Positions 13,203 through 31,931 are shown, counted from the stretch's first letter. The stretch: DNA of 64,000 nucleotides from Bugula neritina (GCA_964035545.1 OZ037767.1:1127680-1191679), one strand, 5' to 3'. Notes: a model not told the origin generated them from the sequence alone. A program made the numbers and translations.

Positions 13203-16200
13203 ATGAGGTTAGACAAGAAAGATAGCTTAGTAAATGCTGGTGAGTTTTGATATATTATTATAATAGTATAAATATATACACTTATAGTACGTGACATTGT
13301 ATTATAGGCATATGATGCAGTAATATAAATATATTATAATTATGCCAAGGCCTAAGTACTGGTTTCAGGGGTTTTATTGAACAAAATACCATTTTAGTAT
13401 ATACTAAAACATTTAAAATTGTACAATATGGCATAGCAACAGGCATTTATACAACATTTATAACTAGAAGTTACAATATTAATATATTTAAGCTGGTTAT
13501 ATATATAGTTGTGCATTCCTAATTCTTTTACAACAGAAAGCCAGCATTACTTTTGTAAATTCTAAATTACAAAAGTATGATTAGGGTACGTGTTTTACAA
13601 ACAACATATAAAAAAATATATTTCAAGCTCTCGATATTTGGCATTTAGCCAAGTTTAGATACTTTTTTCTACTTCTGTGAACTATTAGATTTCTTTGACC
13701 TTACATCAAGGTCATTAGCCTAAACAGCTTGTTTCCCTAGATTAGCTTCCCCAGGGCAATAGCAAGCCTTAAATAAGCTGTAATTATGTAATGAATTAGC
13801 TATAAACTCTACCCACTGCATGCATTTAAAAACTATTTTCCTCTATTGGGTAGGGCTGTAATAGCTAAATGCTAATGTATCCATTTTACTAATTAGCAGT
13901 CTTGAAATAAAAGCTAGTATTCAACTGAACTACATTGGCTAGTTATTAAACTTCATTATATAACTGGGTGTTAGTTGTTAAAGTGAAAGGATATAAGCAT
14001 GTGATAACCTCCTCAGGTGAAGGTCACTGCACTCTTGCTGATGCAAGGTTCAGTTGATTTGCTCTCAAGGAAACGCCTGATTAACTGTTGATTTAGCAAG
14101 ACATTGCATTGTGGGGAAGCTTGAATTGCGACAGTATTGAAACAGAGGTCTAACTGAAAATAATTCACCAATCAAAGAGTGTTTTTGATTAGTGCAATAA
14201 TAAAGTCATAACAATGGCTTTCATCACAGTATGAGTGACTGTGGTTGTAGATTTGTACTTTGATCTGGGGAATAATGGAGTACAGTAGTGGAAATTTCCA
14301 CTCTGAGAACTGCGTTGGTGGTTAATGAGTGTGCCCCTGATAATTATTAATATTGACTTCTCCCCTAAAAGCTATTGAAGACAGTTGCTGTCTCTTTCCA
14401 TGGAATTTTTTCCATGCACGTATTTCACAGATATTGTTATTTTATTATTTTTATCAAAAGATCCCATTTCGTTATTTCTATTACACATTTATTTCTATTA
14501 AGCACTTAATTTCTATTTAAATACTGACCAAAACAATGAAATTCGTTCCTGGCTGGTACATACTTTGCTTAGGAAAGTTTAGCACTACTACCGCTGAATA
14601 GATTAAGGGAAATCCCTTGAGCCATCACTCCTTCCACTGCAATCAATAAATTTGCTCAATTTCCAGATTAGCTGAGTAGGGGGCTTGATGTATGATTCCA
14701 TAAATTCTATTGTTTTGACTTTTTTAGAACTGTGGCTTTGTTCATTAGTATCAATGATTAGCTGTCTGTTTGTTTACTTGGCAGCCTGATATAATAGCAT
14801 CAGGAGTGTGCTGTGGGTGGGATTCTCTACTAGCTAATGAATGAATAACTATTTTTATTTCCTCTTACCAGGAAATGACATAAACACACGTAATTTGTTT
14901 ACCTCAATCATCTGTGAGTGCTTAAAGCAAGCAAACATGCATGCAATTATTTTATTATGCAACTGAACTCACGTGGATATGATTTTACCAGATTTACAAC
15001 AACACTCAACTAGTGAACATACTGCATGAATAACACCATAATACTGCATTATATCATAATACCTAATAATCTGGTGGATAATAATTTTATGCTCACAAGT
15101 TTTGTTACCTCCCAAACTCAAGAGTAAAGTGAATAATCTTGTAGATTCGGTAGATGTGACGAACTGCATCGAATGCCTCGACAGCTGTCTAAGTGGAGTG
15201 GAATGTGATTCTGATCTCCACAGAATGAGAGACATCAGTGAAGTCATCAATCTGAGTGACTACTCCGACTGCTCCCGGCAGCGGGAGCAGCGGAAGGTCG
15301 AGTGGCCGAACTCTCCCCTCGACAGAGGCGGTCAGTACAGATTCGCAAGCGTTTCCTGTGCCGAGAAGAAATGCTCAGCGGTGGGAGTGTGAGTAGTGCC
15401 TGATATTCTTCTTAATATCGAATTGTATTTGAATGACTAGTAGAAACATGTAACATAATAATTATAAAGCTTGTTCATAGTTTTTATCATTAAATACTAT
15501 ATTATATTACAGATATATCATGCACTATACTGCATATAATACCATTTAAAAAAATATGTTGTATTATTTTCTATCAATGTTGTTGTATGTTAATTCTATT
15601 CTCGATATTTTTACAGACAAATGTTGGCTGAAGGCGGGTCAGCTGTTGATGCTGCCATAGCTGTGTCACTAGCAATAGGAGTTGAAAGATCTCTGTCTAG
15701 TGGCATTGGTGGAGGCGGTTTTATGACATACTACAGCAGGTGAGCATCCCCCCCCCCCCGCATAGCCTTATGTACTTTCTTAGACATTTGCTAGAGTAGA
15801 CAAAATGTTTACATACACAAAATAGAAATGAAGATAAATAGTACATGATATCAATTTATTGTTCTAGAGAATTGGAAGAATCGTATATCCTAGACTACAG
15901 GGAAACAGCACCTAAGTCAGCCTACAGTACCATGTATGAAGACAGCAACCTAAATACAAAAATAGGTAAGTCTATTGGACATGATGTAAAATGTCTAAAC
16001 ACTCACTCACTTTAATTCTATGACATATTGTATAATACTTGCTGGTGTTATAGGAGGTGGTTCTATTGCGGTGCCGGGTGAAGTATCGGGAATGTGGGAA
16101 GCCCACCAGCGATTTGGTAAACTGAAATGGTCGAGATTGTTTGAACCGGCAATAGAAATGGCGGAGAAAGGCATAAAGCTCAATGGCTACCTTTCTAGAC

Positions 16201-19200
16201 AACTAGCAAAGTACTACCCCGAGTTTGATTCCACACTGCAGTAAGTCATAGTCACAAGTATTAACGAGATGTTAACAAGGGACTAGTGCTCATATTATTA
16301 TTGTGAATCGATTGCATTTCTGCAACATTTGATTTGATTTTGCAGAGAGATATTCACAAACACAGAAACTGGAGAAGTAAAAAAGGAAGGAGATACGGTA
16401 GTGTTTACCAAACTAGCTGAAACTTACAGACGTATAGCAGCAGAAGGACCAGAAACTTTCTACAATGGAAGTCTGAGAGACGATATTGTGGCTGATTTAG
16501 AAGAGCTAGGTTAGTAGAAGTTTGTTTTATATTAACTTGAAAGTTTGATGTTACTTATAGATAGTAATAATAATTTAGAACATAATTATATCAGTTATTT
16601 AACAAAAACCCTTACAAAATTAACTAAATATATTCATGTTAAGTAGAAAAGGAAAAGCCTATAGAAAGGGAATATAGATAAAAATTAACAGAAAAATATT
16701 ATTGTATTGTTTTTAGTTTATTCCTCTTTAGCTATACATTATTTCAGTGAGGAGTAAACAATTTATCTCTGAGAATTCTATATTGATGTTTAATGAGATC
16801 TCGTTAGGATGAGTATTTGTAAATAATATATGGATACAAATATGCCAACTGATGTTTATCTAGAATGTTGTTGTTGCAGACGGGCAAATAGTCACAGCAG
16901 AGGATCTTGCTGAATACAGAACAGAATTGCGGGCACCTGTAACAACCACCCTCAAGAATGGAGGATATACAGTTATATCTCCACCACCTCCATCTGCAGG
17001 TCCAGTCTTACAAGGAATACTCAATATCTTAGACGGTAAGTGTTGAAACTACCCAGTGGCCCCTGCGGTGTAACGGTTAGGGCGCCGGTTTACAATTCGG
17101 AGGTTTGAAACCTAGTGGGTACAAATATTTTACAGTAGGAATATATTATGAAAAAACTTTTAAGTTTCTAAATGCAAATTATTAAATTTGTTTAAATTTA
17201 TCTTCAAAATAAAACCTTTCCATTTCAGGATATCACTTCACCGCAGACTCCATCTCGTCTAAAAGAGAGCACATAGAGTCTACAGCCACCACCTACCACC
17301 GTGTGGTGGAGGCAATGAAGTTTGCCTACTCCACTAGAATGGACCTGGGAGATCCAAAATTTTCCGACGTGTCGGAGGTATGTTGTGGAAAATTACCAAA
17401 AGATTGCATGGCTAATCCATCATCTCCTAATCCAGAGCTGCCAAACGCATTTTTAATGGAATATTTTAATGGAGATGATCATTATTAATCCTGCCAGAAT
17501 AAATTATGACAGTAATTTCCTTTTCTTTAATGGTTCAATTTAACTGATCAATGTAGCTTTTTATGTTAACTTAAAACGTCCATTTTTTATTTGGTTATTA
17601 GATAGTTGAGAATTTAACTGACTCCGAATATGGAGCTGAGTTGAGGAGCAGAATATGTGATGACACAACTCACAGTATAGAGTATTACGGAGCCACAACA
17701 GACTCTAGGAAGACAACAGGAACTAGTCAGATATCCGTACTAGCTGGTAACGGAGACGCCGTATCACTCACCACTTCCATCAATGCGTGGTAAGTCCTAC
17801 ACTCATTAGGAGGGAAGGAGTGACAGCTGTAGACAATGCTTGATATGCAGCTTGTAGACATTAGAAGAGTAGTTTTGTTGAACAATTGATATCTTCAATT
17901 TTTTTATATACATACTAAGCAGAAGTGAATAAAAATTGAACTGAGAATCAAAGGAATAGCCCCACTCTAACATTGCTGAAGGCTGATACATTGTCCTAAT
18001 ACAAGTTTCTTATAAATCATAACATCTAAATTTATATCAAGTTGTACCAGTATTTTTCTGTGCACTGTAGCTTCACAAGTTATATTTATCAACGTTCGAT
18101 ACCATTGTACCTAGTAACCTAAAACAGTTTGCATAACCAAGTGCTGGTAGACTTTCGATTATGACAACCCAATGCTTAATTTCTACATCTCACAAAGGTA
18201 AAAATTTGTAATAAAAATTAGTTGCTAAGCAACAAAACATTCACTTCCTATTTTTGCTTTTAATAGCTGGGGATCCAAAAGAATGGGAAAAAGAACGGGT
18301 ATCATATTCAATAACCATATGGATGATTTCTCTATGCCCGGCACACCAAGTTGGACAGAAGACGCGTGGGTAGCGCCATCTAACTCAGCTAATTGGATAG
18401 AACCAGGGAAGAGACCTCTATCAGCCATGTGCCCTTCGATAGTGACAGACTCAAATGAAGATGTCATTTTGGTCACTGGTGGATCAGGGGGAGCACAGAT
18501 TACCACTGCTACAGCTCTGGTACGTATCAACAGCTGAAGTCAAACTGATCGTTAAGTGAATTCATTACTTCTATTAATAACTGTTTGGTTGGAGGAAACT
18601 TAATTCAATTAATTCATATTTCAGACTATGATAAACTACCTGTGGTTTGGTCACAACCTACTAGATTCTGTATCAAAGCCAAGATTACATAATCAGCTTC
18701 TACCCAACACCATATTCTACGAAAAAGGATTCCCAGAGGTGAGCCGCTGCACAGCTATTATAATTTTGACAAAACTTGATTGTTTGTTTGTTTGTTGTAT
18801 TTCATTAAAATAATATCTAGAAAAACATTAAAAGAAGAAATGTCTTTATAGAAAATACTTTACTAAATTGTGTTTATTTAAAATATTAATATTACACAGG
18901 ATAGTTAAGGGCATCCTCCACATAAATATGATGAATTTGTAGTCTCAGTTCTTAATTATTATTTCTCTGTGGGTGGTGTGCGTGTTGCCTACTAATCATA
19001 ATATAGCATGAGGTTTAGCCGTGACCAATATACAGCCACATCTACTAGAGCTGCACCTCTTCGAATTATTATTATTTGTGCAGTCAATGTTGAGTTTGCT
19101 CAGTGTCTGTGGTTAATTATCATCAATTTATCATAGGCTGCATGTATTACAACATGGCATTCTCTTCTCATCAAGTTACAGCTCAATAATAAGCCTACTA

Positions 19201-22200
19201 TTTGGTGATTGAAATTATATCAATTTAAATTATTATGTTTTACCCAGTTGGATTACAAAAGCCCTCAATACTTTTTTAATCTCGTTACCTTTTGGGAAAT
19301 TTTTTCAGAATGGCTATGTAACAAATAATCTAAATTGTACTCTCTTGTAAACTAAGGTTGAGATCATTGACTATTAGCTTTCTATCCATAGATGCCATTG
19401 GCATGACTGTAACACTTTCTGTGAGAGAAGGCAGTTCTAGTTCTACATCTTTTTAATCAAAGCAGCAAATAGTGATGATATGACTCATCAAACACAGTGG
19501 CCCTGCTTAGTAAGGTAGCATTGTGAAAAATACCAATATGAGAAATATAGTATGGTTATGAGTTTACGGCTAATTTCTATCCCAAACATACATATACAAT
19601 GCATATTTTAGATTAAAGTTTTATTTTGCTATCTATACTACAGATTATTCAAAGCTGTTTAGTGTAAGGCAGTGTACTATATTATATTTTAAAGAATCTT
19701 TCTATTGAACGGGGATGCAAGGATGTTTTATGGCCTTGTGACTACATCACTTCATAATCAATTATCTGTTTTAACATTTAACTAGTGTAGTGAAAATAAT
19801 AAATAACATACTGGAGCCACTTGAACCTTGTAAGAAGCTGACTTCAGTGATGGTAGTTTACTTGTTAATTGGTAATTTAACTAGGTTGGTGCGTCTACGC
19901 ACTATAATAGAGGGAATTTAGGAATTTAAGTCATGGGTGCTTAGGTTGAAATATCAAAAATTTTAATTTATATAAAAATAAAAAATGCAAAACTTAAACT
20001 AATGCTAATCAACAATGCTTATATATAAACTTTCCATTATAAAACTTGTTGCCCAAATTTGGAATTAAACCACAGACATTTGGTTTTTAAGCTGATGAGC
20101 TATGACAGTCACATCAAAACTTCTAAATTCTGCCTTAACCCATTGTGGTCATACAATTAGCTAGGGTGCTGTTTTCGATAGCTACAATTAATATTTGCTA
20201 CAGCCAGACCCACACAACCTGTTGTTTTTGTGGTTGCATTACGTAGGAGCAGTTGCTGCTTGGAATTACTAAAATACAAAAATTGCGCCTTTTCTGACTC
20301 AGTGCAGGGTTATTCAGTTCAGTTACAAACAAGATAGCCATGGGGAAAAATTACAATGAGAATCAGTGTGGATTTTTAGCAACAATTTACTTTATACACC
20401 TTAAATCAGGTGCTGAAGTAGAGCATTTCAACAGAGAGTTTAAAGTCACAAAAGGATTAACTGCCAAGGATTTTAGTAGAAAAAGAAAGCAAGCTAGTAG
20501 GCATTTCAATAACGCCCTATCCTACGTTAATAATAATAAGGAGAAAGAAAAAGATAATTTTGTTTCCTATTTCTCATTTCAAAACTTCAAGAAGCTGTCA
20601 GCAGCAAGTAAACTAAAGCACAACTACAATAATTGCCTAGAATGCGCTGAAAACCATAGACCAATGTGGATAATGAAAAGAAGCAACAAATGCCATCTAG
20701 AGACTCCTGCTAAAACTGCTTTGAATTCTTTAAAAGCTGTATTGGACAAGACACCGACTGAGATAACTGCTACTGTGGTGGATGATTTTGTTAGAAATGT
20801 AATAAAACCAGCCACAGAAAAATTAAAAGGAACACCCTTCTCAGCAAAGTTATCTATTGGCTCAAAGCGTAAAGCAGTGACAGTTGACGCAGTCCCTAAG
20901 AAGGTTCGCAGAGCCATCATCAAGTCTGCCAATGATGAAATGAATGATGAAACCACTAATAAAGATTTCATATCACTCTATGCATCTAAGCAATCACAAT
21001 CAGAGTGGGATGTGCAAAGAAAACGATCATTTGGTGAAATGAGGCAAAACAGAAAGAAATCACACACCGGCAGACTAACTGATTATACATTCAATGAAAT
21101 AGTTGTAAAATCAGCTTTAAAAGAAAATGAGGACATAAATTGGTCTGCTCTAAGCAAGTCAGCAAACTTGAAAAATGCCAACAATAAAGCTCCCAGAAAC
21201 GCAGGCCAGGTAAGACTTAATCAAATTGTAACTACTACTGCTAATTACTTTTTTGACAGAGTTACCATTTTTTATTTTAAATATGTTATCTATGCAGAAA
21301 AAGTTTGACAAGATTATCACCATTACTTTATTTCATCTTTGATGGATCTTCCAAAAACATAAATTGCACACACACATAATATATACTGACATATATACAC
21401 ACACATAATATATACTTACATATATACATACGTATACACACATAATATATATGTCATAGAAGTTGAGCAAAAGTAATATTTGCAAATGTAGTACATCTAT
21501 CATCTATGAAACAGGAGTGTATTGACTTGTTTACCAGGTTATGAAAGAAGTCGCAGAACATGTTTTGAAGCATCCTGTACAAAGAAAGCCAAAAACCCGA
21601 ATATCATGGCTAAATTACAAAAATCTCAGTCTAAATATCAAACGAAAAGCTTCTGTAACTAGGCTAAAAATAAAGAAAAAGCGGATGATAGACAACGGAG
21701 AGATTGATGTTGGGAAAGCCATAGTACCAATAGAATACCAGACTGTACAAGTTCAATCAAATGGCACATTGGTAGGTTGATTACTCCTAAAGTCAATAAC
21801 TGAGCTTTTCAGCACACTTGTACTATGTTACAGTAAGTATAAAGGACTGATAATATCATTTCTTACTTTATCTAGTTATTATTTAAAGTATTTGGTATAT
21901 CATTCTTTAATTTTGCAGGTCAAATCTAAAAAAGAGGTATCTGGTAGAAAGTTCTCTCTTCTAAACATACGGAGAGATCATCTCGCCAGAATGGAAAAGC
22001 TGAAGATTTTAAGATCTGCAGCTGACATAGAAAAGATGTCTGTAGTAGATTCACTAGCTTTCCTGGAGAGAAATGGTAGGATTTGAATTAAGTATATCCA
22101 GAGGCTCATTTGTCTTTAAAACTTGTTCTACAAATAAATGATACTGATTTTCTTAACATAATGAACAACATTCTATGACTTTTGAGATTTATGAGCTACA

Positions 22201-25200
22201 TAAATCAAAACTAGCGCTGCAATAGCTATAGAAAACTTTATTTGAACAAAAAAAGATATTTACAGCTAAAATGCTTGCAATGTGGAGCAAGGCTTATCTC
22301 AATATATCCATGCCTTGTGGAAATCAAAGAAGCCTCAAAATTTCTGTCATCTTTTTAGAGATAAGCTTTTTTAGACTAAGACCAAGTAAATTTAGTCAAT
22401 ATTCCAAAGGCCCATTGCTCCGAAGGTGCATTATTCCGAAGGTGCATTATTCCGAAGGTGCATTAGTCTGAAAATTGGTAGATATAGTATTAAATCACTG
22501 AGAATATCATAAATTTTACTCACAATCTTGCTATATTATTGCTAGCTGTGGGTGGCATGCGTGTGGCCTACAAGTTTGTAATTTTTTAGCCTGAAATTAC
22601 GCTATGATGCTGCCTCAATTAAGGGCTGCATCATCTATCAACATTCCACTGTGGATGCTCCATAAACTAAGTACACAGCAAGCTATTCACTAGCCTGTCA
22701 GCTAGCAAGCCTGTAATTAGTAATCTATGCATTAGTTTCTCTTCATCTCCAAGTGTTCACTGAAGTATGAAGTGTTGTGCAAGGGTGATATAATAAGTAT
22801 TTTTATTTCACAGTTTATATAAAAATAACAGCTATAGGCAATGAACTCAAAATATCCAGTTCAATGGCTATAGCGACTGCAATTCTATTCTAGCTACAGT
22901 CAGTCAGCTTATATAGGCCCTTCACACGTTGACTATTAACTGAAAAACTAAATTAAAAAATATTAAAGGAAGCAAACATTTTGGGTCTAGTGTAGTGCAT
23001 TTATGATAAGCTTAGAAAAAGTTTACCTTGTATTTTATAAAAAATAGTTTGCATTTGAAGTTGGCGTCAAAAAATTATTGGTATTGAATGAAATAGTAAA
23101 TTTCTGGCTTGGCAGTTAATTATTTAATATCACATATTTAATCTCTAAAATTATTTGTAAGCTGCTAAACTGCATTATTCTATGCTAGTATTCTTAATAT
23201 CAGTAAATACGAGCATTGGAGACAAAAAATAATAAACATCTTACTCTGAAATTAAATAACCAAAGCTGCACACCAAACCAAACAACCCTACAAGACATGT
23301 AGATGAGGGCAACATTATTAGTATATAAGAGTTCAGGCCCAAATAAAACCTCACCTAACCTAAAATTTGAAAACCATGTTGCAGATCTTCCTGTTGCTCA
23401 GACTATGTTCAATAAATAATTTTAGTTCTAATAATAGTTCTACTAATTTTCGGACTAATGCACCTTCGGAATATTGCCCAGTCCCCCCTAAAACTACCAT
23501 AAAAAATCAGTCTGGAATGCGCAATCACATTGAATGCAATTCTTTAAAATAATTACTATTAAATGTTTAGGGATAGTGGTTGGCAGTATGGACAGCCCCA
23601 AGGAACGCCTTAAAGAAGCCTCGCAAAGTAGACATATGGTTTTGTGGCATGACCATTCAGAAATTGCTGGTAAACATTTATTGATTCATGTATTTTTGTA
23701 CAAAGAAATGTTAGTTACATAATCAAGCTAAGCTGTTCACCAATATATCTTATATGTATTTTTTTCAGGTAAAAGCCACTACTTGTTCATGGTATGGTTT
23801 TTGTACGACCCATGTACATACTATACAGATGGAGAGTTTTCAAAGATGAACTGCAAAGTAAGCTGATAGAATTATGCAAGCTCAATATAGAACACATTTC
23901 AATTAGGGTCATCTTATTTGGATTAAAGTTGCTACAATAAGCCAAGCTCTCACTACAGTATTACAAGTGTCGTTTAGTCTTTGGTAACAGCAATTACTAA
24001 TGACTAGGTGTTTTAAAGAACAAATGTTGAAATACACCAAAATATTCTGAAACATAAATGTTTACTTTATGCTAATTCAAGAAACACCAGTCAATGTACA
24101 ATCAGTGGTGGAATCACCTTACATCTATCTACTTGCCCAATCCAACTCTTCCGTTAAGGATCAACTTCTTTATGTTCCTACTCGACTAGAAGACCTTAGA
24201 GAATTGGAGGAAAAAATTAGCTCAAAAGATGGACGAACATTTACTGACAAACTAAGATTTTTTTCTGGTGATAGTCCAGCAAGGCAACTAGAAGCTGGGC
24301 AGCAATGTGGAGGTAAGAGTGATAAACTATAAATTGTTTACACAGGATGAAATACAAGATAGCTTTTGCTACAATAATAACAATACGTGTTTGACTTATT
24401 CCATGTATAAATTCCCCAAAAAGAATACATATTTACAAGAAACTATATTATTTATGATGAAACTTGATAAAAACATGCATATGTATGTTCAGGAATGTTC
24501 CCATGTATGTGTGGCACCCAAGACATTTACTTCAGTAACACTAGCAAATATAGCCAAGAAGGAGCTTTCTATAGTTCACAAGACCGCCTTCAGCTGCTCC
24601 ATAAGACAAAAACATGGGAAGATGGTTTTACTAAAGGGAACCTAGCAGTCTTTCAGACAATGAAGGTATGAAATTAAGCTGAGTTATAAATAAACACTGG
24701 TTGGGAGAAACGGCACTTCCATGTAATACATTTATATATGAGCAGCAATAATTACACTTTTTCAGACTGAAGGGCTCAGGAATGAATTGTTTCACAGAGG
24801 GGTTGCCTATTCAAGTGCAGAGAACATTTCAGGGCTAAGAAGAATTTTGAATGTTAGCCTAAAAGGTCAGAAAATTTAGAATGATAAGTTTAAACTATAT
24901 GTGGTTACAGCGTTGTCGGATGAGATACATAGAAAAAATATGGGCTGCATGAAGCCATAGTAACATAGAATAAATCTTCATCCAATCTTAGTTTTGCATC
25001 TAGTGAAAGTAGCGATTCATTGTTATGTATAGACCCACACAAGCTACAGTGGGTGCACACATGTATATATAATCTTTATGAAAAACTTAGTTACGAATAT
25101 AACTTAAGCCTCACATAAGTTTCTAAATACCTACTTTACAGGTGTGAAAAGGCCTCCTGCTCTTCTTTGTACTAAGCTGGAATCACAGATCGATATAGGC

Positions 25201-28200
25201 AGCTACGAAATTTCATCAATAGAACCATTACATGATCTAAAAAATGTTATCAACAAAATTTTAAAAGAACTACCTAAAGCTGCAAAGAATAAAGAACTCA
25301 AGGAAAAATTGACCAATCTTGTTTCAGACATTGAAGGTGAGTAGAGATTCTAACTTGCTAGTAGAAATTGCTAACACACATTTTCAATATTGTCTATATC
25401 AAAATTAAATAGCCATTTCAAAAACAATTATAAACCTATACAAACATGAATTATAGCTCAAAATAGAGAAATGAAGGGAACAGAATGCCGGCTTAATTTG
25501 GTAAAAGTTACCATCATGCTACAAGATTTCCAGCACACTGAAGATGGGAGAGCCATGTACGTTATGCTAGCAGCATTGACAGAGCTGCAAAGTTTGGCAT
25601 ACATGTGTGACACTAATAGATGTCCTAGAACAATCCTCAGGGCATATAATCAAAGTTTTCTTTTTGCCATTAAGTGCATGGAACTATTTGAAAACCCAGA
25701 AACTTGCACCAAGCGCGCTATGTTTGGGATGCCCTTCCATTGCCTTTCAGTGCACTTGCCTGAAACATTGAGACTTGTTTCAGGCAGATCATTAGTAGCC
25801 GAACACGCTGAAAGGCACTTTTATAAACTAAGGTGCGTACTAAAAAATAATACTAGTACAACAGGAATTTATGCAAAGTTTGTCCACTCACTTGAAAATG
25901 AATGCAAATAGCTTACTATAGGGGTGCTGTAGAAAGAACTCAGACCTATTTAAATTCAGCCCTGATAATATTACTGTGATCTATGAAAACAGTATTGTTT
26001 TAGGGAACTAACGCTGAGGTGCTCCAATAGAAAATCGCAAAGTATTATAGCAAGTGCTATGTTTAGAATAGTGGTAGAAAGAAAGGCTGCTGATGATGCC
26101 ATTACCAGCTACGGCAGACAGGAGCACACTATCTCCAATGCATGTAGTGGCCTTAGCCTAGGACACCACACCATATTCTCAAACAAGTAGGTCACTGTCT
26201 GATAAGTAAGAATAGTAGCTACTTTGTTGTGTATGATATTGCTACTAAACACAGGCAAATATGCTACTTAAAAGTCTATCACTATCTTTACACTAGTTTC
26301 CTCAAAGCTCATAGGACAGCAACACTTCACCATTTCCGACGAATTGCTGACTTTCTAGAAATTGGAGAAGGAGTTTGGTTCAAGGTACATGATGGGGGAG
26401 TAGAGTTCAAGGATGGAAAAAACTGCCCAGACAACTACAATTCAGGGCCAATATTAACTCATTTCAGGTAAATATCTTAACTACCTATATACCACTATAC
26501 ATCATATATTGTATATATCATACAACAAAAGTAGACTGTTTCTTCCTAAAAATTAATCAAAGAAAATAAAATTAATTAAAGAAAATAAGCTTCCACTTGA
26601 AGAAAATTAAATGGAAATTCTTTACAACTTGAATCTAAATTGCATGTCCTAGCTTGAAAAAAATTGCATACAAAATTTGAACAGCTACTATCTAATTTTT
26701 ATTAATTCTAAGCAGTACGTTTTATTTAACATATTTGGTAACCACCAGAAAATTTTTTGTTAGATCGAGAAACATGAAAGACATTAACAACATGCTGAAG
26801 ACAAGCTGGGAGTTTTGCATCAGAAATAAAAACTCATTAAAAATTCCACTTTTGTGTGACATGCTGACAGATAAGAAGACAGCTGATAAGCAAGGTAAAA
26901 TATTCTTTTGAAATATATATATATATACACACACACACACATATATATATATATAGTTATTTATATGTTAATTACAAGCAATTTGAAAAATGAGCAATAA
27001 TTTTCTTCTGCCTAAAATGTCTATTGATAAAATTTTAACAGTGTCAAGAAAATATGAAGAAATCAAGCCTGCTATAAGCAATGTGTTGAGGAGTTTGGCA
27101 GAGGACAAGCATAAAGAAGTAGAGAACTCTATTGCTGTTTCTGCATCCAATACCTTGAATGAAACAGATGAGAAGCTTGATGAATCTTCATATGTGTGTG
27201 CTGTACCATTGTTGACACAATGTAAGTAATTTTAGATGCTGCCTCCCAATTTTAAAATTACTTATCAAGTTGAAATACATCAAATACACTGAGAAAAAAT
27301 TATTTTAAATTGGCAGGCCAGACAGAGGTACCAAGCATTTTGCCTAAGAAACTTCAACAAAAGAACACAGTTACTGGTACGTTGCTTTAAGTATGGTTAT
27401 CATACACATATAACATACTTATTTTCAGTAACATAAGTTATAGTCATTTAGATTTAGAAAATAGAACCATGCAGCTACTATAATGACTTCAGGGCAGCCA
27501 ATGCACTCACATGTAATCTGAAATAATTAGAATCACCCTGGTGTTTTACAGCATATATTTCTGCCCACCTTACTTGCAATCAGTTGTTTTTCAATTTTAG
27601 ATGCTATGAGGAGTCTATGGCCTTACAGTAAAACGATTTTAGAAAGCTTTCTTTCAGCTAAACACCGGTTTAAACAACATAACTCTTGCGTTAATAAATT
27701 AATGTTGAAATCTGCAAGCCTTAAAGTAAAGCCATATTTCTTGAAATTTGTTAAAATATTAGAGGAAGAAGAAAAAGCAAAAACCATAAGCAAGTTCAGA
27801 GATAGAGGACTGATTTCTATGGAAAGTAACTCAGAAGACAATTGGAAGATTAAAATTATTAATTATTGGTTGAATCAAATTAATGAGTTTCTATAATAAA
27901 ATTATTCGCATCCTTTTTTTCTATTTTTTTTTCTAACTTTAAGAAAAATAAACCTAAAGGTGAAACCAAATCAATATCAAAAGATGAAACTATTTTTTCT
28001 GAAGTGTAATTCAACATCACTAAACATGTTTGTTCTAGTTCAACATCATTATGATTAATATTATGACATGAGTCTTACAGTTAGTGTTATTGATACTCAT
28101 ACTGATACTCAGTCTCATGTCGATACTCAGTCTCATGTCGATACTCATAGCTGATGACTTTTATTAGATACGTCATTGCCAGTAACAAAATGAATACAAA

Positions 28201-31200
28201 TATATAAAAAATTTAATGAATAATAATTATAATAATAATATACATTATATTAAATTAAAATAATACTAATAGTAATAGTAAATAATAAAAAATTATTATT
28301 AAAAATTACTAATATATTACTATTAGTATTAGCCGTAATACTAATACTAATAACTATAAGATCATCACTATGAATATTATGTGAGTATTTGCTGAAAAAT
28401 TTACTTACCCTGTCCCGCAAAAAATACTTTCACTGTTGTATAATTCCAATCTCAGTTTGTCACTTGGAGAGTGAGAATAATATGAACACGCAGACAGTAC
28501 CCAGCTATCGCACTTTGTACACTGTATAGGCAGGGATGTAGTGGTACCCATACGGTCCCATACGCCGTATGGCCTAGAAGAAAATAGGCTGTTCTTGGCC
28601 ATACGCCCGTATGGGCATATTTTTGAAAGATGATTAGTGCACAGGATAGTTAGGGCATCCTCACTGAGAATATTATCATAAATTTCGCTCACAATCTAGT
28701 TTAGGTTCTTGTTATGTTAATGCTATGTGGGTGGCATGCGTGTTGCCTACTTGTGATTGTTTAGCTTGAGATTACACTATGAATAATATGCAGCTATCAA
28801 CATTCCATCTTCTCATCTCTCCATGTTCATTGAAGCGCGAAGTGCTGTGCATTGGTGATTACTAAGGAAAAAATTTTCATTTTCAGTGTATAAATCACTA
28901 ATTTGTAGAAAATCTATGGAGGCTATTGAAAAGATAAAAATACATGCTATGCATAAATTTCTCAGGTTTCCGACAGTGTTGGTTTTATTCGAATACCATG
29001 CTTTCCTGCTGAGATATTTGGCAGGGATTGAAAAATAAACTTCTCAAGTAAAATTGGCTAAAAATGAGTAGATTTTTGTCTACAACTTTGCAATAAAAAA
29101 ATTGAAAACTCGAAAATGCAGGTGCTCTGAGGAAGATCTAAAATTTTAATTCTAGGCTTTCTAGCACAATTAAGTATACGATTTTATTTTGCGGGATTGA
29201 ATTCTTATAATATACTAATAATTAATGTGGCCTCAGCAAGGCAGTGACAGCTAGAAAGTTGCCCTTAGCTATCTTGTGTGGACTTGAATTTTGTCAATAA
29301 GCAATGAAATTTGGAAAAAAACCAACATGAAATCCAGAAATAAAATCAAAATGTCTTCAGGAAACAGTACCAGGTGTGTAGGAGAGGTTAATGAAAATTT
29401 ATCACTGAGGTCTACAGGTACTATATCCACATTTTGGTCAAAAACCTAGCAGCGTTATTGCATGTTCATGTTAATGATTTTTTTTGCAAACTGTATACCG
29501 CCATAAGTAACCTTTTATGTCTGGTTGTACTAACGTCTGGCTTTACATTTAATCATCTTCTAGAATCTAGGCTAACACATATTAAACCTGTCAAATTTGT
29601 TCTTTTGGGGTATATTTCTTTGATGTGTCTAGTGGAAGCTCAGGGGTTTTACTTTAAAACCAAGTTAACATACTCTTCTTTGGTGTGTTTTATTGTGTGC
29701 AAGGAGGTGTGGTGGTATCTCCCTATGGATTAGACTAGTGCTCTAATAAACTCCAAATAGGTTTTCTACCAATTTCTGCTTGCCAATGAGATATCAATTC
29801 AAATTGCTTTTTCTGATTTGCAATCTTCCTCTGTTCTGATAAATAATTCTTTTTCTGTCCACGTCAGTGTATTAAATATTTGAAGTAATCAGGTTGCATT
29901 TGGAGAGCACTTGTTACCTGCCTCTATCCTCCCATTTTTTTGAGATCTTCAGCAATATTTCTGTACAGGTTGGACTTAGTGTCAGTTGAGTAAGACTACA
30001 TTTAAAATTACAGTCAACAGGTATGGCACAATACTGAATATTTATATAGTTTGCAGCAATGCACAGACGTCGTGTAGCTGGTATGGCATGAAAATAATAG
30101 CAAGGTGCACATTTCAACACAGATTTTTTTCAGAAGAATTATAATTCACAATGGCTTTGAATTGCATAAATTTACATCAGAAGGGCTTCGGCGGCGGGGC
30201 GCTGCCCCGGACCCCGCCGGGGGCCTGGGCGGCCCCCTGGACCCCGGCCTGAGAGTATGGCCATGAATATTTTTACCACTACATCCCTGTGTATAGGTCG
30301 CGAATAATGAGCCAATGTAATGGATTCTCATCCTCATTATTATAATTACTGTTGCGTATGTTTTGAATGCTGTAATTGTAGCTAAGTTGGGCTAGCTTTC
30401 TAATGCCTTATTATTGTGATTGTTGTTAAAGCTTTCAGTATAATGTAATTTTCATGAAATACGCATTCCAGAGTTATTTCCTCTTTTTGCTATTTTATCG
30501 TTTTGCATTAATACTGATACTGGAAATTTGTGTGGCTTTTATGAATACCTTCAATACATAGGTTGGCCTATTGAATTATTCGTTTTCCTTTGTCTACTTT
30601 TCTTTTGTTTCTGTCAAGCTTAACTTTCTTTTGTCTGTTGGAACATTCTAGATGTGAATTCTTGTGTATAAAAGCAGGCGAATTTCCAGTATAGTTCAGA
30701 CTACTACTGGAGCTCGCTGGTAGTTGGGCCCTAAGCTGTATCTGATACAATAAAGGTTATCCTTATTTGTACTCAAATACTTGGCTTATTCTCTCTACCA
30801 CAAAGAGTATGTTCAGGCACTAGTTGCATTCATAACCCACAGTTTACTACACCATAAATACAGCAATTTGCTTGAAGTCTCAGTATGTTCAGGAGTGGAT
30901 GTTTCATATTTTATAACCCCCCCCCCCATTCAATATATAAACTCCCCATTCTAATTTTTTACTTTTGCGTTGTATTTACATGAATTATATTACGTTATTT
31001 AATTAATAATAGTTTAAGAAATATGCTGCAATTTTAGATAAAGTTACTTTTTCTAAATTAGGTTATTGTTTACTTCTCCCCCTAGCGTCACGACATCCTA
31101 CGCGCTCTTTTGACATTAGTACAATCACGCATTCAAAGCTTATCATAACATTGTCAACATTGCATTGCATAAGCAGAGAGCTAGTAGCTAGTAACTAGTA

Positions 31201-31931
31201 ATAAGTGCGTTGGTGTCTTCTCACCTCTACGTGTTCAACGAAGCGCGAAGTGATGCGCACTGCTAATTCCTCAGGGAAAAATATAGCATTTTCAGTGTAT
31301 AAATCACTAATTTATGAGAAATCTAGTAAGGTTATTGAAAAAATAAAAAAACTTACACTGGAGAAATATCTCAGGATTCCAACCGTGCAATTTTTATTCA
31401 GATATCATGTTTTACTGCTGAGATATTTTACTGGTACTGAAAAGTCAGCTTTTCAGCCAAAATTGGCCAAAATTGGGCAGTTTTTTGTCTATAACTTTGC
31501 AAAAAAAGTGAAAATTGAAAATTCCAAAAAAGTTGCACTGAAGAAAAAGAAGATCTACAACATAGTTTTTAAATTTTGGCTCTAGCACAATTAGGGGAGA
31601 TTTTATTTTACTGGTACTGAATTCTTATATGATTACAATGCAAACCTCAGTGAGGCAGTTGCAGCTAAAAGGTTGCCCTTAACTATCCTGTGTAATTCCT
31701 CGTGGAAACATAGTAGCTTGATAACCCTTGCTCTTTAAATATCTATCTTTAATAGACCAGCTGAGCAACTTGTATTTAATATTTTAGGAATATTTGGAAG
31801 AACTAGAAAAGAAGAAACACAAACTCACGCCAATCAGTTTTCCGCCAGTTACAGAGTCGGTCTGCTCGCACAACGGAGCCATCTTTGGTGTCGGTGACTT
31901 CAGGAGGTTAGGAGGAGCTGATGGTTTTTAA
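13203..31931 (+). CDS. GGT: Gamma-glutamyl transpeptidase / glutathione hydrolase (multi-exon)
   Basis: Exons encode GGSAVDAAIA, SGIGGGGFM, DYRETAP, IAVPGE, GT-SQISV (autocleavage Thr), NNHMDDFS, PGKRPLSAM, GGSGG, PRLHNQLLP; last exon 31788-31931 (..GDFRRLGGADGF*) joins the phase-0 donor at 18738; first exon 13203-13239 is tentative. Confidence 0.9.
17056..17130 (+). mobile_element. tRNA-derived SINE-like fragment in a GGT intron
   Basis: GTGGCCCCTGCGGTGTAACGGTTAGGGCGCC head, similar to the copy at 59395. Confidence 0.5.
20340..27896 (+). CDS. 16-exon divergent DDE transposase, ~1181 aa (CMC/Transib/RAG1-type core)
   Basis: Exons 20340-21209, 21538-21771, 21919-22075, 23571-23669, 23769-23857, 24081-24312, 24493-24665, 24766-24865, 25142-25336, 25457-25832, 26004-26186, 26297-26467, 26764-26894, 27042-27221, 27317-27376, 27601-27896 sum to 3546 nt in one frame; motifs WHD, FSGDSPAR..GG.FPCxC, IEPLHD, MKGTECR, FHxxxxH, AEHAER; exon-6 acceptor is AA, not AG. 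Confidence 0.8.
22397..23476. mobile_element. Non-autonomous inverted-repeat element in transposase intron 3
   Basis: CCGAAGGTGCATTAGTCTGAAAATTGGTAG (ends 22481) is inverted at 23440-23469; left arm has tandem 16-bp ATTCCGAAGGTGCATT units; exact termini and TSD not resolved. Confidence 0.6.
22496..22790 (+). mobile_element. Degenerate internal fragment of the CACAGG MITE family
   Basis: Shares CACTGAGAATAT.., GTGGGTGGCATGCGTGT.GCCTAC and CTATCAACATTCCA blocks with 28640-29278. Confidence 0.7.
28531..30289. mobile_element. Non-autonomous hAT-type element
   Basis: 16-bp TIR CAGGGATGTAGTGGTA / TACCACTACATCCCTG; perfect 8-bp TSD TGTATAGG (28523-28530, 30290-30297); subterminal CCATACG/CGTATGG repeats and a GC-rich tract at about 30183-30250. 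Confidence 0.92.
28640..29278 (+). mobile_element. 639-bp MITE of the CACAGG family, nested in the hAT
   Basis: CACAGGATAGTT-AGGGCATCC ... TTGCCCTTAGCTATCTTGTG; 2-bp TSD TG|...|TG; left part resembles 18895-19020 and right part resembles 31218-31692. Confidence 0.88.

Follow-up and report, generated by a model that had tools for sequence, protein, structure and literature searches.

The CMC/Transib (CMCT) clan of cut-and-paste transposons is characterised by C(2)C and H(3-4)H motifs, by CA..TG ends and by target-site duplications (TSDs) of 2-5 bp (PMC12730594). For Chapaev elements (Kapitonov & Jurka 2007; Yuan & Wessler 2011, as summarised in PMC4079192), the hallmarks are invariable CAC..GTG ends, TSDs of 3-4 bp and three motifs, C(2)C, LH and H(4)H. 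TSDs of 2 bp are also known from animal CACTA (TRC) elements (PMC1636069, PMC4298943), and the length of the duplication varies even within one Transib lineage, for which 3-bp and TA duplications have been described (2026 preprint 10.64898/2026.08.26.747230). Here, we analyse a 64-kb stretch of the genome of Bugula neritina (GCA_964035545.1 OZ037767.1:1127680-1191679), referred to as the window, whose DNA is AT-rich and eukaryotic (GC around 34%; host genome 216 Mb). The window contains an element at 18895-31692 (+), which is very likely a young copy of a cut-and-paste transposon that carries its transposase gene, belongs to the CMCT clan and comes nearest to Chapaev-type CMC elements by its hallmarks. 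All coordinates refer to the whole window, and the transposase gene lies on the plus strand unless stated otherwise.

The borders of the element were defined by blastn comparison with five other genomic copies, with which it shares sharp common ends; once a nested insertion at 28531-30289 is excluded, it is about 11.03 kb long. The 5' terminal inverted repeat (TIR) of 19 bp (18895-18913, +) starts with CACAGGA, is identical in all copies and in the short non-autonomous relatives described below, and is the perfect reverse complement of the 3' TIR (31674-31692, +), which ends in TCCTGTG. Matching flanks form a TSD of 2 bp, TA, on the left (18893-18894) and right (31693-31694) side. TSDs of this length accompany six of six full-length copies with variable sequence (TA, AT, TT, TA, TA and CT); the duplications seen here overall are TA, AT, TT, CT, CA and GA. 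The copies were found by a six-frame genome search with exon 10 of the transposase gene and subsequent alignment of 20 kb around each locus. This search returned five other loci that are 99-100% identical in protein, and about ten more diverged or broken relics; thus, the genome contains six full-length copies at unrelated loci, the window included. Intact frames of 1181-1183 amino acids are found in four siblings, and the fifth, older copy has 14 stops. Compared with the four young siblings, the window copy differs by 0.37-0.40% in exons and by 0.88-1.03% in introns. Since the divergence is low, and lower in exons than in introns, the copies are young and their coding sequence has been under some constraint. 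Older paralogous transposase lineages, which are 49-84% identical in exon 10 and of which several contain stops, are scattered over the genome (G000:C6:7091407, C3:12191860, C2:20954688 and others), and the family has therefore been resident for a long time, in several waves.

Several hundred places in the genome match the terminal 300 bp of the element with 95-96% identity (637 first-look candidates; all 40 that were scored match the full 300 bp), and its first 100-170 bp recur at 70-77% identity (419 candidates). These ends define a family of miniature inverted-repeat transposable elements (MITEs) with several hundred candidate copies, one example being L021:2545-3300. Four of five sampled MITEs are 756-757 bp long and the fifth has about 1.7 kb between its ends; the same 19-bp ends are present in all five, and perfect 2-bp duplications in four. 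A piece that is 70-72% similar to the MITE also lies inside intron 3 (22477-22755) of all full-length copies.

The transposase gene was assembled from open reading frame (ORF) pieces at 20340-27896 (+), which join into one frame via GT..AG introns. When joined in a script for the frame count, the 16 exons comprise 3546 nt, corresponding to 1181 amino acids with zero internal stops. An earlier note on this DNA had proposed 16 exons in one frame of around 1180 amino acids, and this gene model holds, with the reservation that canonical splicing of the window copy would break the frame. Exon ends were set in two independent ways, by transcript joints and by collinear match to a family profile, which was built from 25 full-length relatives. 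Exons 1-13, each translated separately, match profile positions 20-912 in strict order, end to start; judging from the translated exons, such an ordered match cannot be chance. For the transcript comparison, contigs from four public runs of four studies, which carry the same organism label or that of its 'symbiont metagenome', were aligned to 21900-27899. Joints were seen at 22075|23571, 23669|23769, 23857|24081, 24312|24493, 24665|24766, 25336|25457, 25832|26004, 26186|26297, 26467|26764, 26894|27042, 27221|27317 and 27376|27601. These 12 joints skip exactly the predicted introns, with GT..AG borders in all except one, and the four runs thus contain spliced RNA. The RNA-seq support of the junctions, which the earlier note had named as a check, is therefore partial: no RNA joint was seen for E1-E2 and E2-E3, which lie outside the 6-kb stretch compared with RNA, or for E8-E9, which is not among the joints listed, and these three rest on GT/AG sites and profile collinearity. 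The contigs are 95-99% like the window and differ from it at many exon-10 positions, so that they most likely derive from sibling copies or from another strain and not provably from the window locus.

Exon 1 (20340-21209, +) encodes amino acids 1-290, matches profile positions 20-196 (E 1e-20) and contains a conserved H-x5-C-x2-C-x3-H knuckle (20619-20657, +). It is followed by exon 2 (21538-21771, +), which is bordered by AG/GT sites and matches profile positions 231-284, and by exon 3 (21919-22075, +; profile positions 286-326), whose donor is confirmed by the joint 22075|23571. Exon 4 (23571-23669, +), delimited by transcript joints, encodes the presumed first catalytic Asp, D448, within a WHDHS motif (codon 23651-23653), exon 5 (23769-23857, +) is defined by the joints on both of its sides, and exon 6 (24081-24312, +; profile E 6e-33) encodes the presumed second one, D547 of GDSPAR (codon 24270-24272). 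The predicted zinc-ligand pair C565/C567 (24504-24512) is located in exon 7 (24493-24665, +), which is again delimited by transcript joints. Exon 8 (24766-24865, +) occupies the position at which some relatives have a SAP domain, and exon 9 (25142-25336, +) contains the invariant EPLHD or 'LH' motif (25222-25236) with L681-H682 (H codon 25231). Exon 10 (25457-25832, +; profile E 9e-42), framed by the joints 25336|25457 and 25832|26004, encodes the H(4)H pair H811/H816 in FHCLSVH (25735-25755, +) and E832/E835 in EHAER (25801-25815, +; E835 codon 25810). Exon 11 (26004-26186, +), exon 12 (26297-26467, +), which encodes a conserved C-terminal domain with RIADFL...G.WW, and exon 13 (26764-26894, +) are supported by both transcript joints and profile. 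The remaining exons form a tail: exon 14 (27042-27221, +), which is lineage-specific and has transcript joints and no profile match, exon 15 (27317-27376, +), defined by transcript joints, and exon 16 (27601-27896, +), which was placed by a transcript joint and the frame and contains the stop codon. During construction of the model, an exon 10 start at 25469 and an exon 12 start at 26255 were replaced by 25457 and 26297 from the RNA joints. The four runs also contain a joint on the minus strand (22127-25135), which skips 3007 bases with CT..AC ends, equivalent to a GT..AG intron on that strand. It connects about 21942-22127, over exon 3, with 25135-25237, over exon 9, at a depth of 58-185, several times that of the sense exons. 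Its source may be a spliced antisense RNA, or a related copy that gave rise to a chimeric transcript.

At the border between intron 5 and exon 6, the window reads TTCAA|GAAAC, with an A at 24080, and all five sibling copies read TTCAG|GAAAC; the window copy has thus lost the canonical intron-5 acceptor (24079-24080, +; AA instead of AG). As far as the assembled copies tell, this mutation is confined to the window copy among the six full-length ones. Exon 5 ends in phase 0, and the sole AG before exon 6 in the window, 24080-81, needs one extra base; its use is computed to shift the frame and to lead to a stop at codon 519, before the second Asp. The joint from 23857 to 24081 in the transcript contigs preserves the frame. 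A 16-nt micro-exon at about 23963-23978 had been considered to mend the phase between exons 5 and 6 and was ruled out by the joint of 23857 to 24081 and by the normal AG of the siblings. Owing to the loss of the acceptor, the window copy is probably unable to make its own enzyme. A codon comparison with the sibling copies revealed eight private amino acid changes in the window copy, none of which falls into a motif; private variants of this copy lie, for example, at codons 4, 45, 158 and 897. We read the copy as recently disabled, though still open to mobilisation in trans, and as a probable passenger at present that relies on intact siblings.

When exon 10 was compared by HMMER with the full set of 1.84 billion representatives, 417 relatives were obtained, to which more were added by word-indexed searches with one relative and two profiles. 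The named sources among them are bivalves (Mytilus, Crassostrea/Magallana, Saccostrea, Pinctada, Argopecten), the hemichordate Ptychodera, the amphioxus Branchiostoma and the cnidarians Paramuricea, Actinostola and Oculina. Across 25 full-length relatives, the invariant residues are GD in GDxPAR, E and H in EPLHD, both His in FHxxxxH and both Glu in ExxER; conservation is at least 90% for W and D in WHD and for each Cys of the pair. The window protein retains all conserved D/D/E, Cys, His and LH residues in the order D448, D547, C565-x-C567, L681-H682, H811-x4-H816 and E832/E835, and the exon-10 alignment agrees. The motif positions given in the earlier note (WHD 23651, SGDSPAR 24270, CxC 24504-24512, IEPLHD 25231, FHCLSVH 25738-25755, AEHAE 25810) are all correct, and its check on the conservation of the three acidic residues had a positive outcome, as they are invariant or at least 90% conserved in the relatives. 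The long N- and C-terminal extensions it described are real, and exons 14-16 have no counterpart in the profile of the relatives. Its statement that CxC replaces CxxC applies to the branch that unites the window with the bivalves, whereas the cnidarian and amphioxus branches of the family keep C-x-x-C; a single member has C-x3-C. Since CxxC is kept in other branches, CxC represents the loss of one residue within the family. The sole recurrent Pfam match is a SAP domain (PF02037), which 12 of 60 relatives carry as an insertion that separates the Cys pair from the LH motif (example P0088:320-353; best match E 1.5e-8 in one relative); in exon 8 of the window, no SAP match is detectable.

Compared with the published hallmarks, D547, C565-x-C567, H811-x4-H816 and E835 occur in the order of the catalytic and zinc motifs of the CMCT clan, and the termini CACAGG...CCTGTG come with 2-bp TSDs in six of six full-length copies and four of five MITEs. 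A RAG1/Transib-like architecture is predicted for the core of one relative, P0146 (residues 345-810). The TSD length falls within the range quoted for CMC elements (2-4 bp) and outside that of canonical Transib (5 bp). The CAC...GTG termini, an LH motif with invariant L and H, the H(4)H pair and a Cys pair present as CxC or CxxC agree with Chapaev. The element is therefore read as a member of the CMC/Transib clan and not of the RAG/Transib group, and by the published hallmarks it comes nearest to Chapaev.

It is possible, though we would not favour it, that the family is instead a separate unnamed deep lineage of the CMCT clan, on a level with Chapaev, Mirage, EnSpm, Plavaka, ESTA and Transib and inside none of them. 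No similarity to named families is found at the level of hidden Markov models (HMMs): Pfam recognises no transposase family in the window exons, in nine long relatives or in 60 relatives at E values up to 10 (neither Transposase_21 nor RAG1), PDB sequences, searched by profiles of the whole family and of its H(4)H-E block, return no RAG1 or Transib chain at E<=10, and two profile searches of a set of 5.8 billion proteins, made to reach a named family, led to unnamed relatives only. All relatives in the databases are labelled 'uncharacterized' or 'hypothetical', and a literature search found no description of the family. Chapaev-like motifs stand next to a 2-bp TSD, some members have a SAP insertion, and one branch has CxC; this mixture of features would also fit a lineage of its own. 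However, the genomes of bivalves, amphioxus and cnidarians have been mined for repeats for years, so that an existing EnSpm or Chapaev entry may already cover the family, and absence from Pfam is normal for animal CMC elements.

The fold of the core was predicted with AlphaFold2 for residues 345-810 of relative P0146, using a 60-sequence alignment, and thus not for the window protein itself; the model has a mean pLDDT of 94.3 and a pTM of 0.92. In a Foldseek search against the PDB, all 49 matches at E<=0.001 are RAG1, BbRAGL or HzTransib (best 5.6e-10), and the next is the P element at 0.01. VIA-align gave a Z score of 22.5 for mouse RAG1 553-1004 (396 residues aligned, root-mean-square deviation (rmsd) 3.9 A), followed by HzTransib (19.3), BbRAGL (18.7), the P element (14.7), ISCth4 (about 9), and retroviral integrases and Hermes (about 8). 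In the model, the first Asp is residue 40 in strand 1 (30-44), the second Asp is residue 139, two past strand 4 (128-137), helix 397-412 carries the His pair, and helix 421-435 begins with ExxE; as modelled, this layout of acidic residues is an RNase-H-like DDE topology. In RAG1, the corresponding residues are D600, D708, C727/C730, H937/H942 and E962. We infer that the offsets of the aligned ranges to these residues are consistent, as the second Asp and the Cys pair share an offset of about +17-18, and the His pair and the Glu one of about 3-4. By analogy with the ExxE of RAG1, we presume that the second Glu, E835, is likely the catalytic one. Pre-RNase-H, RNase-H, zinc-binding and C-terminal parts of the RAG1/Transib/CACTA type are predicted with high confidence for the core of the relative. 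The proposal of the earlier note of a RAG1/Transib/EnSpm-type fold with collinear D, D, CxC, H..H and E is supported by the P0146 core model together with the Foldseek and VIA searches, and the RNase-H fold it wanted checked by AlphaFold and Foldseek is predicted for this relative; the fold has no power to split RAG1/Transib from CACTA/Chapaev.

A divergent member of the Transib/RAG1-like lineage, related to ProtoRAG and with a TSD shifted from 5 bp to 2 bp, is the next explanation, and we regard it as improbable. The best match among solved structures is RAG1, above HzTransib. To our knowledge, no structure of a CMC transposase (CACTA, Chapaev) has been solved, and the clan is represented by RAG1, ProtoRAG RAG1L and one Transib only. 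The PDB can therefore only answer 'RAG1', which wins this search by default. Predicted structures in the ESM Atlas point elsewhere: plant CACTA proteins with Transposase_21 and DUF4218 match at TM 0.72 (395-398 aligned, rmsd 3.7-3.9), fungal Plavaka at TM 0.65-0.71 (365-400 aligned) and rotifer Transposase_21 proteins at TM 0.69 (376 aligned), and an arthropod cluster, one third of whose members carry RAG1_RNase_H and which is Transib-like by our reading, reaches TM 0.62 (349 aligned). The predicted CACTA and Plavaka transposases (given together as TM 0.69-0.72, about 395 aligned) thus fit better than this partly RAG1_RNase_H cluster. By language-model features, RAG1 clusters (0.90) and a Transposase_21 cluster (0.89) stand side by side. 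Because the predicted CACTA and Plavaka transposases match equally well, the fold cannot separate RAG1/Transib from CACTA/Chapaev.

The termini and the N-terminal region bear on the same question. The first seven bases of the element, CACAGGA, share five of seven with CACAGTG, the heptamer consensus of the recombination signal sequence, and by eye no nonamer-like block is present 12 or 23 bp inward. For the N-terminal region, a moderately confident model of P0146 residues 1-400 was obtained (pLDDT 78.8 overall, 87-96 at residues 150-360, low confidence at 1-50). Foldseek returned nothing at E<=0.001 for these 400 residues. In an exhaustive VIA search, the five highest-scoring chains out of 48,161 comprise HzTransib (21-74), three RAG1 chains (458-527 between them) and BbRAGL (545-595); we take RAG1 458-527 to be the dimerisation and DNA-binding domain (DDBD). 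These matches are weak, with Z 4.7-5.5 over about 50 residues, and are followed by small helix-turn-helix DNA-binding domains on model residues 200-275. The DDBD-like match of the modelled N-terminus is therefore suggestive and lies within the noise range for helical models. An NZD entry is listed in neither PDB search of this model; residues 1-50 are of low confidence, and the protein may still have a Chapa domain. A Transib origin would also be compatible with the duplication, as Transib relatives with 3-bp and TA duplications make TSD length not decisive (10.64898/2026.08.26.747230). On the other hand, none of the relatives matches the Pfam RAG1 model, the invariant LH together with H(4)H is the published Chapaev signature (PMC4079192), and no RAG2-like partner gene was found in the element, where a weak PHD-like fragment is all that the 2-kb tail contains. 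Domestication as a host recombinase gene would likewise fit the 15 introns, the transcription and the purifying selection on exons, but is hardly credible for a gene that has no fixed single-copy locus and lies between perfect TIRs with TSDs at six unrelated loci, in copies that differ by about 1% or less and are accompanied by cognate MITEs.

Several points weigh against the placement of the element as a mobile, Chapaev-type member of the CMCT clan. Mobility is read from the genome copies. A sequence-level tie to any named family is missing in Pfam and in the profile searches of PDB sequences. The TSD in the copies examined is 2 bp long and not 3-4 bp as in Chapaev. The fold prediction concerns a relative with 30-45% identity in the core, and the triad was located by secondary structure and range arithmetic. 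Finally, with contigs 95-99% like the window, transcription is assigned to copies of the family and not provably to the locus itself.

We infer the following mechanism. The enzyme would bind the CACAGG ends through its N-terminal region and would cut them by a two-metal site formed by D448, D547 and E835, which may be braced by a zinc held by C565/C567 and H811/H816 (Cys2His2). Re-insertion would occur with a 2-bp stagger, and the MITEs would be moved in trans by the same enzyme.

The remainder of the element was also searched for further genes. The 2-kb tail contains no intact second ORF, no TnpA-like second protein and no Kelch or RAG2-like ORF, and sparse two-copy repeats were the only ones found in the subterminal regions, with no obvious repeat arrays. 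A minus-strand ORF fragment in the tail (28405-28692) matches the PHD finger weakly (PF00628; its E value of 0.021 falls short of the Pfam cut-off), and an intact version of it is located at L012:5642-5794 (-). Near the 3' end, a 126-amino-acid ORF (31205-31585, +) resembles a 50-amino-acid ORF (28886-29038, +) in the nested insertion (...YKSLI.EKS..IEKIK...); as the MITEs also have the region in which it lies, it probably represents a repeat module common to both rather than a gene. The nested insertion itself (28531-30289, 1.76 kb) is found in the window copy only and is flanked by an 8-bp duplication at 28523-30 and 30290-97. Together with the private splice-acceptor mutation, it marks an early stage of decay of the window copy, which is a modest point. 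Upstream of the element, ORF pieces at 16020-18537 (+) look by eye like exons of what we take to be a gamma-glutamyltranspeptidase (GGSIAVPGEV..., ...TGGSGGAQITTAT...), and the transposon seems to be placed in or just after this putative host gene.

Tentatively, and with less confidence than the clan placement, the family could be regarded as an unnamed deep CMC/Transib lineage, spread across cnidarians, bivalves, hemichordates and amphioxus, in which motifs of the Chapaev type occur together with a stagger of 2 bp and a core architecture of RAG1 grade that includes a DDBD-like element at the N-terminus. If this were true, the four intact copies, which are about 99% identical, and the abundant MITEs would make it a naturally active and experimentally usable outgroup, with which one could ask what features of RAG1 and Transib (hairpin chemistry, zinc sites, dimer geometry, stagger length) are older than the split of Transib and RAG. 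A confident model, invariant catalytic and zinc residues, intact young copies and a ready MITE substrate are available in one small genome and together offer a practical system to test the reach of RAG-like chemistry beyond Transib; the same system could be used to test what fixes the target stagger at 2 bp versus 5 bp. The element also indicates that mobility is compatible with 15 introns. For annotation, it is relevant that Pfam does not see the family and that many invertebrate proteomes list its members as 'uncharacterized'.

Among the described systems, Mirage, ESTA and Plavaka share CA..TG ends, TSDs of 2-5 bp and C(2)C / H(3-4)H motifs with the element (PMC12730594). ESTA has a 2-bp TSD as well and was linked to RAG1 by HHpred (PMC12730594), and predicted models of Plavaka match at TM 0.65-0.71. 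Unlike the family described here, ESTA, Plavaka and other lineages in PMC12730594 are fungal, and ESTA duplicates TA specifically, whereas the TSD sequence is variable here. With RAG1, ProtoRAG RAG1L and Transib (PDB 4WWX, 6XNX, 6B40, 6PQN), the family shares the core from the pre-RNase-H to the C-terminal domain (Z 22.5 over 396 residues, rmsd 3.9 A), the order D, D, Cys pair, His pair and ExxE, and a CAC-initiated end. It differs from them by a sequence identity of only about 10% with no HMM-detectable similarity and by a TSD of 2 bp instead of 5 bp, and no RAG2-like partner gene was found in the element.

EnSpm/CACTA elements, including animal TRC elements such as SmTRC1 (PMC1636069), resemble the element in their 2-bp TSD, multi-exon spliced transcripts and size of about 10 kb, and about 395 residues of the predicted fold align with Transposase_21 proteins at TM 0.69-0.72. 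In contrast, the ends are CACAG here and CACTA in plants or CCC in animal TRC, neither a TnpA-like second gene nor obvious subterminal repeat arrays were found, and Transposase_21 (PF02992) was detected neither in the window exons nor in 60 relatives at E<=10 nor in the host genome. Chapaev, as described in PMC4079192, differs in its TSD of 3-4 bp compared with 2 bp here and in its CxxC compared with CxC in the window branch; its N-terminal two-zinc 'Chapa'/NZD-like domain was not recognised here, where a small HCCH knuckle is the only such feature. The element has the following in common with Chapaev: CAC...GTG ends, the set of motifs, and a spread among animals that includes amphioxus, cnidarians and molluscs.

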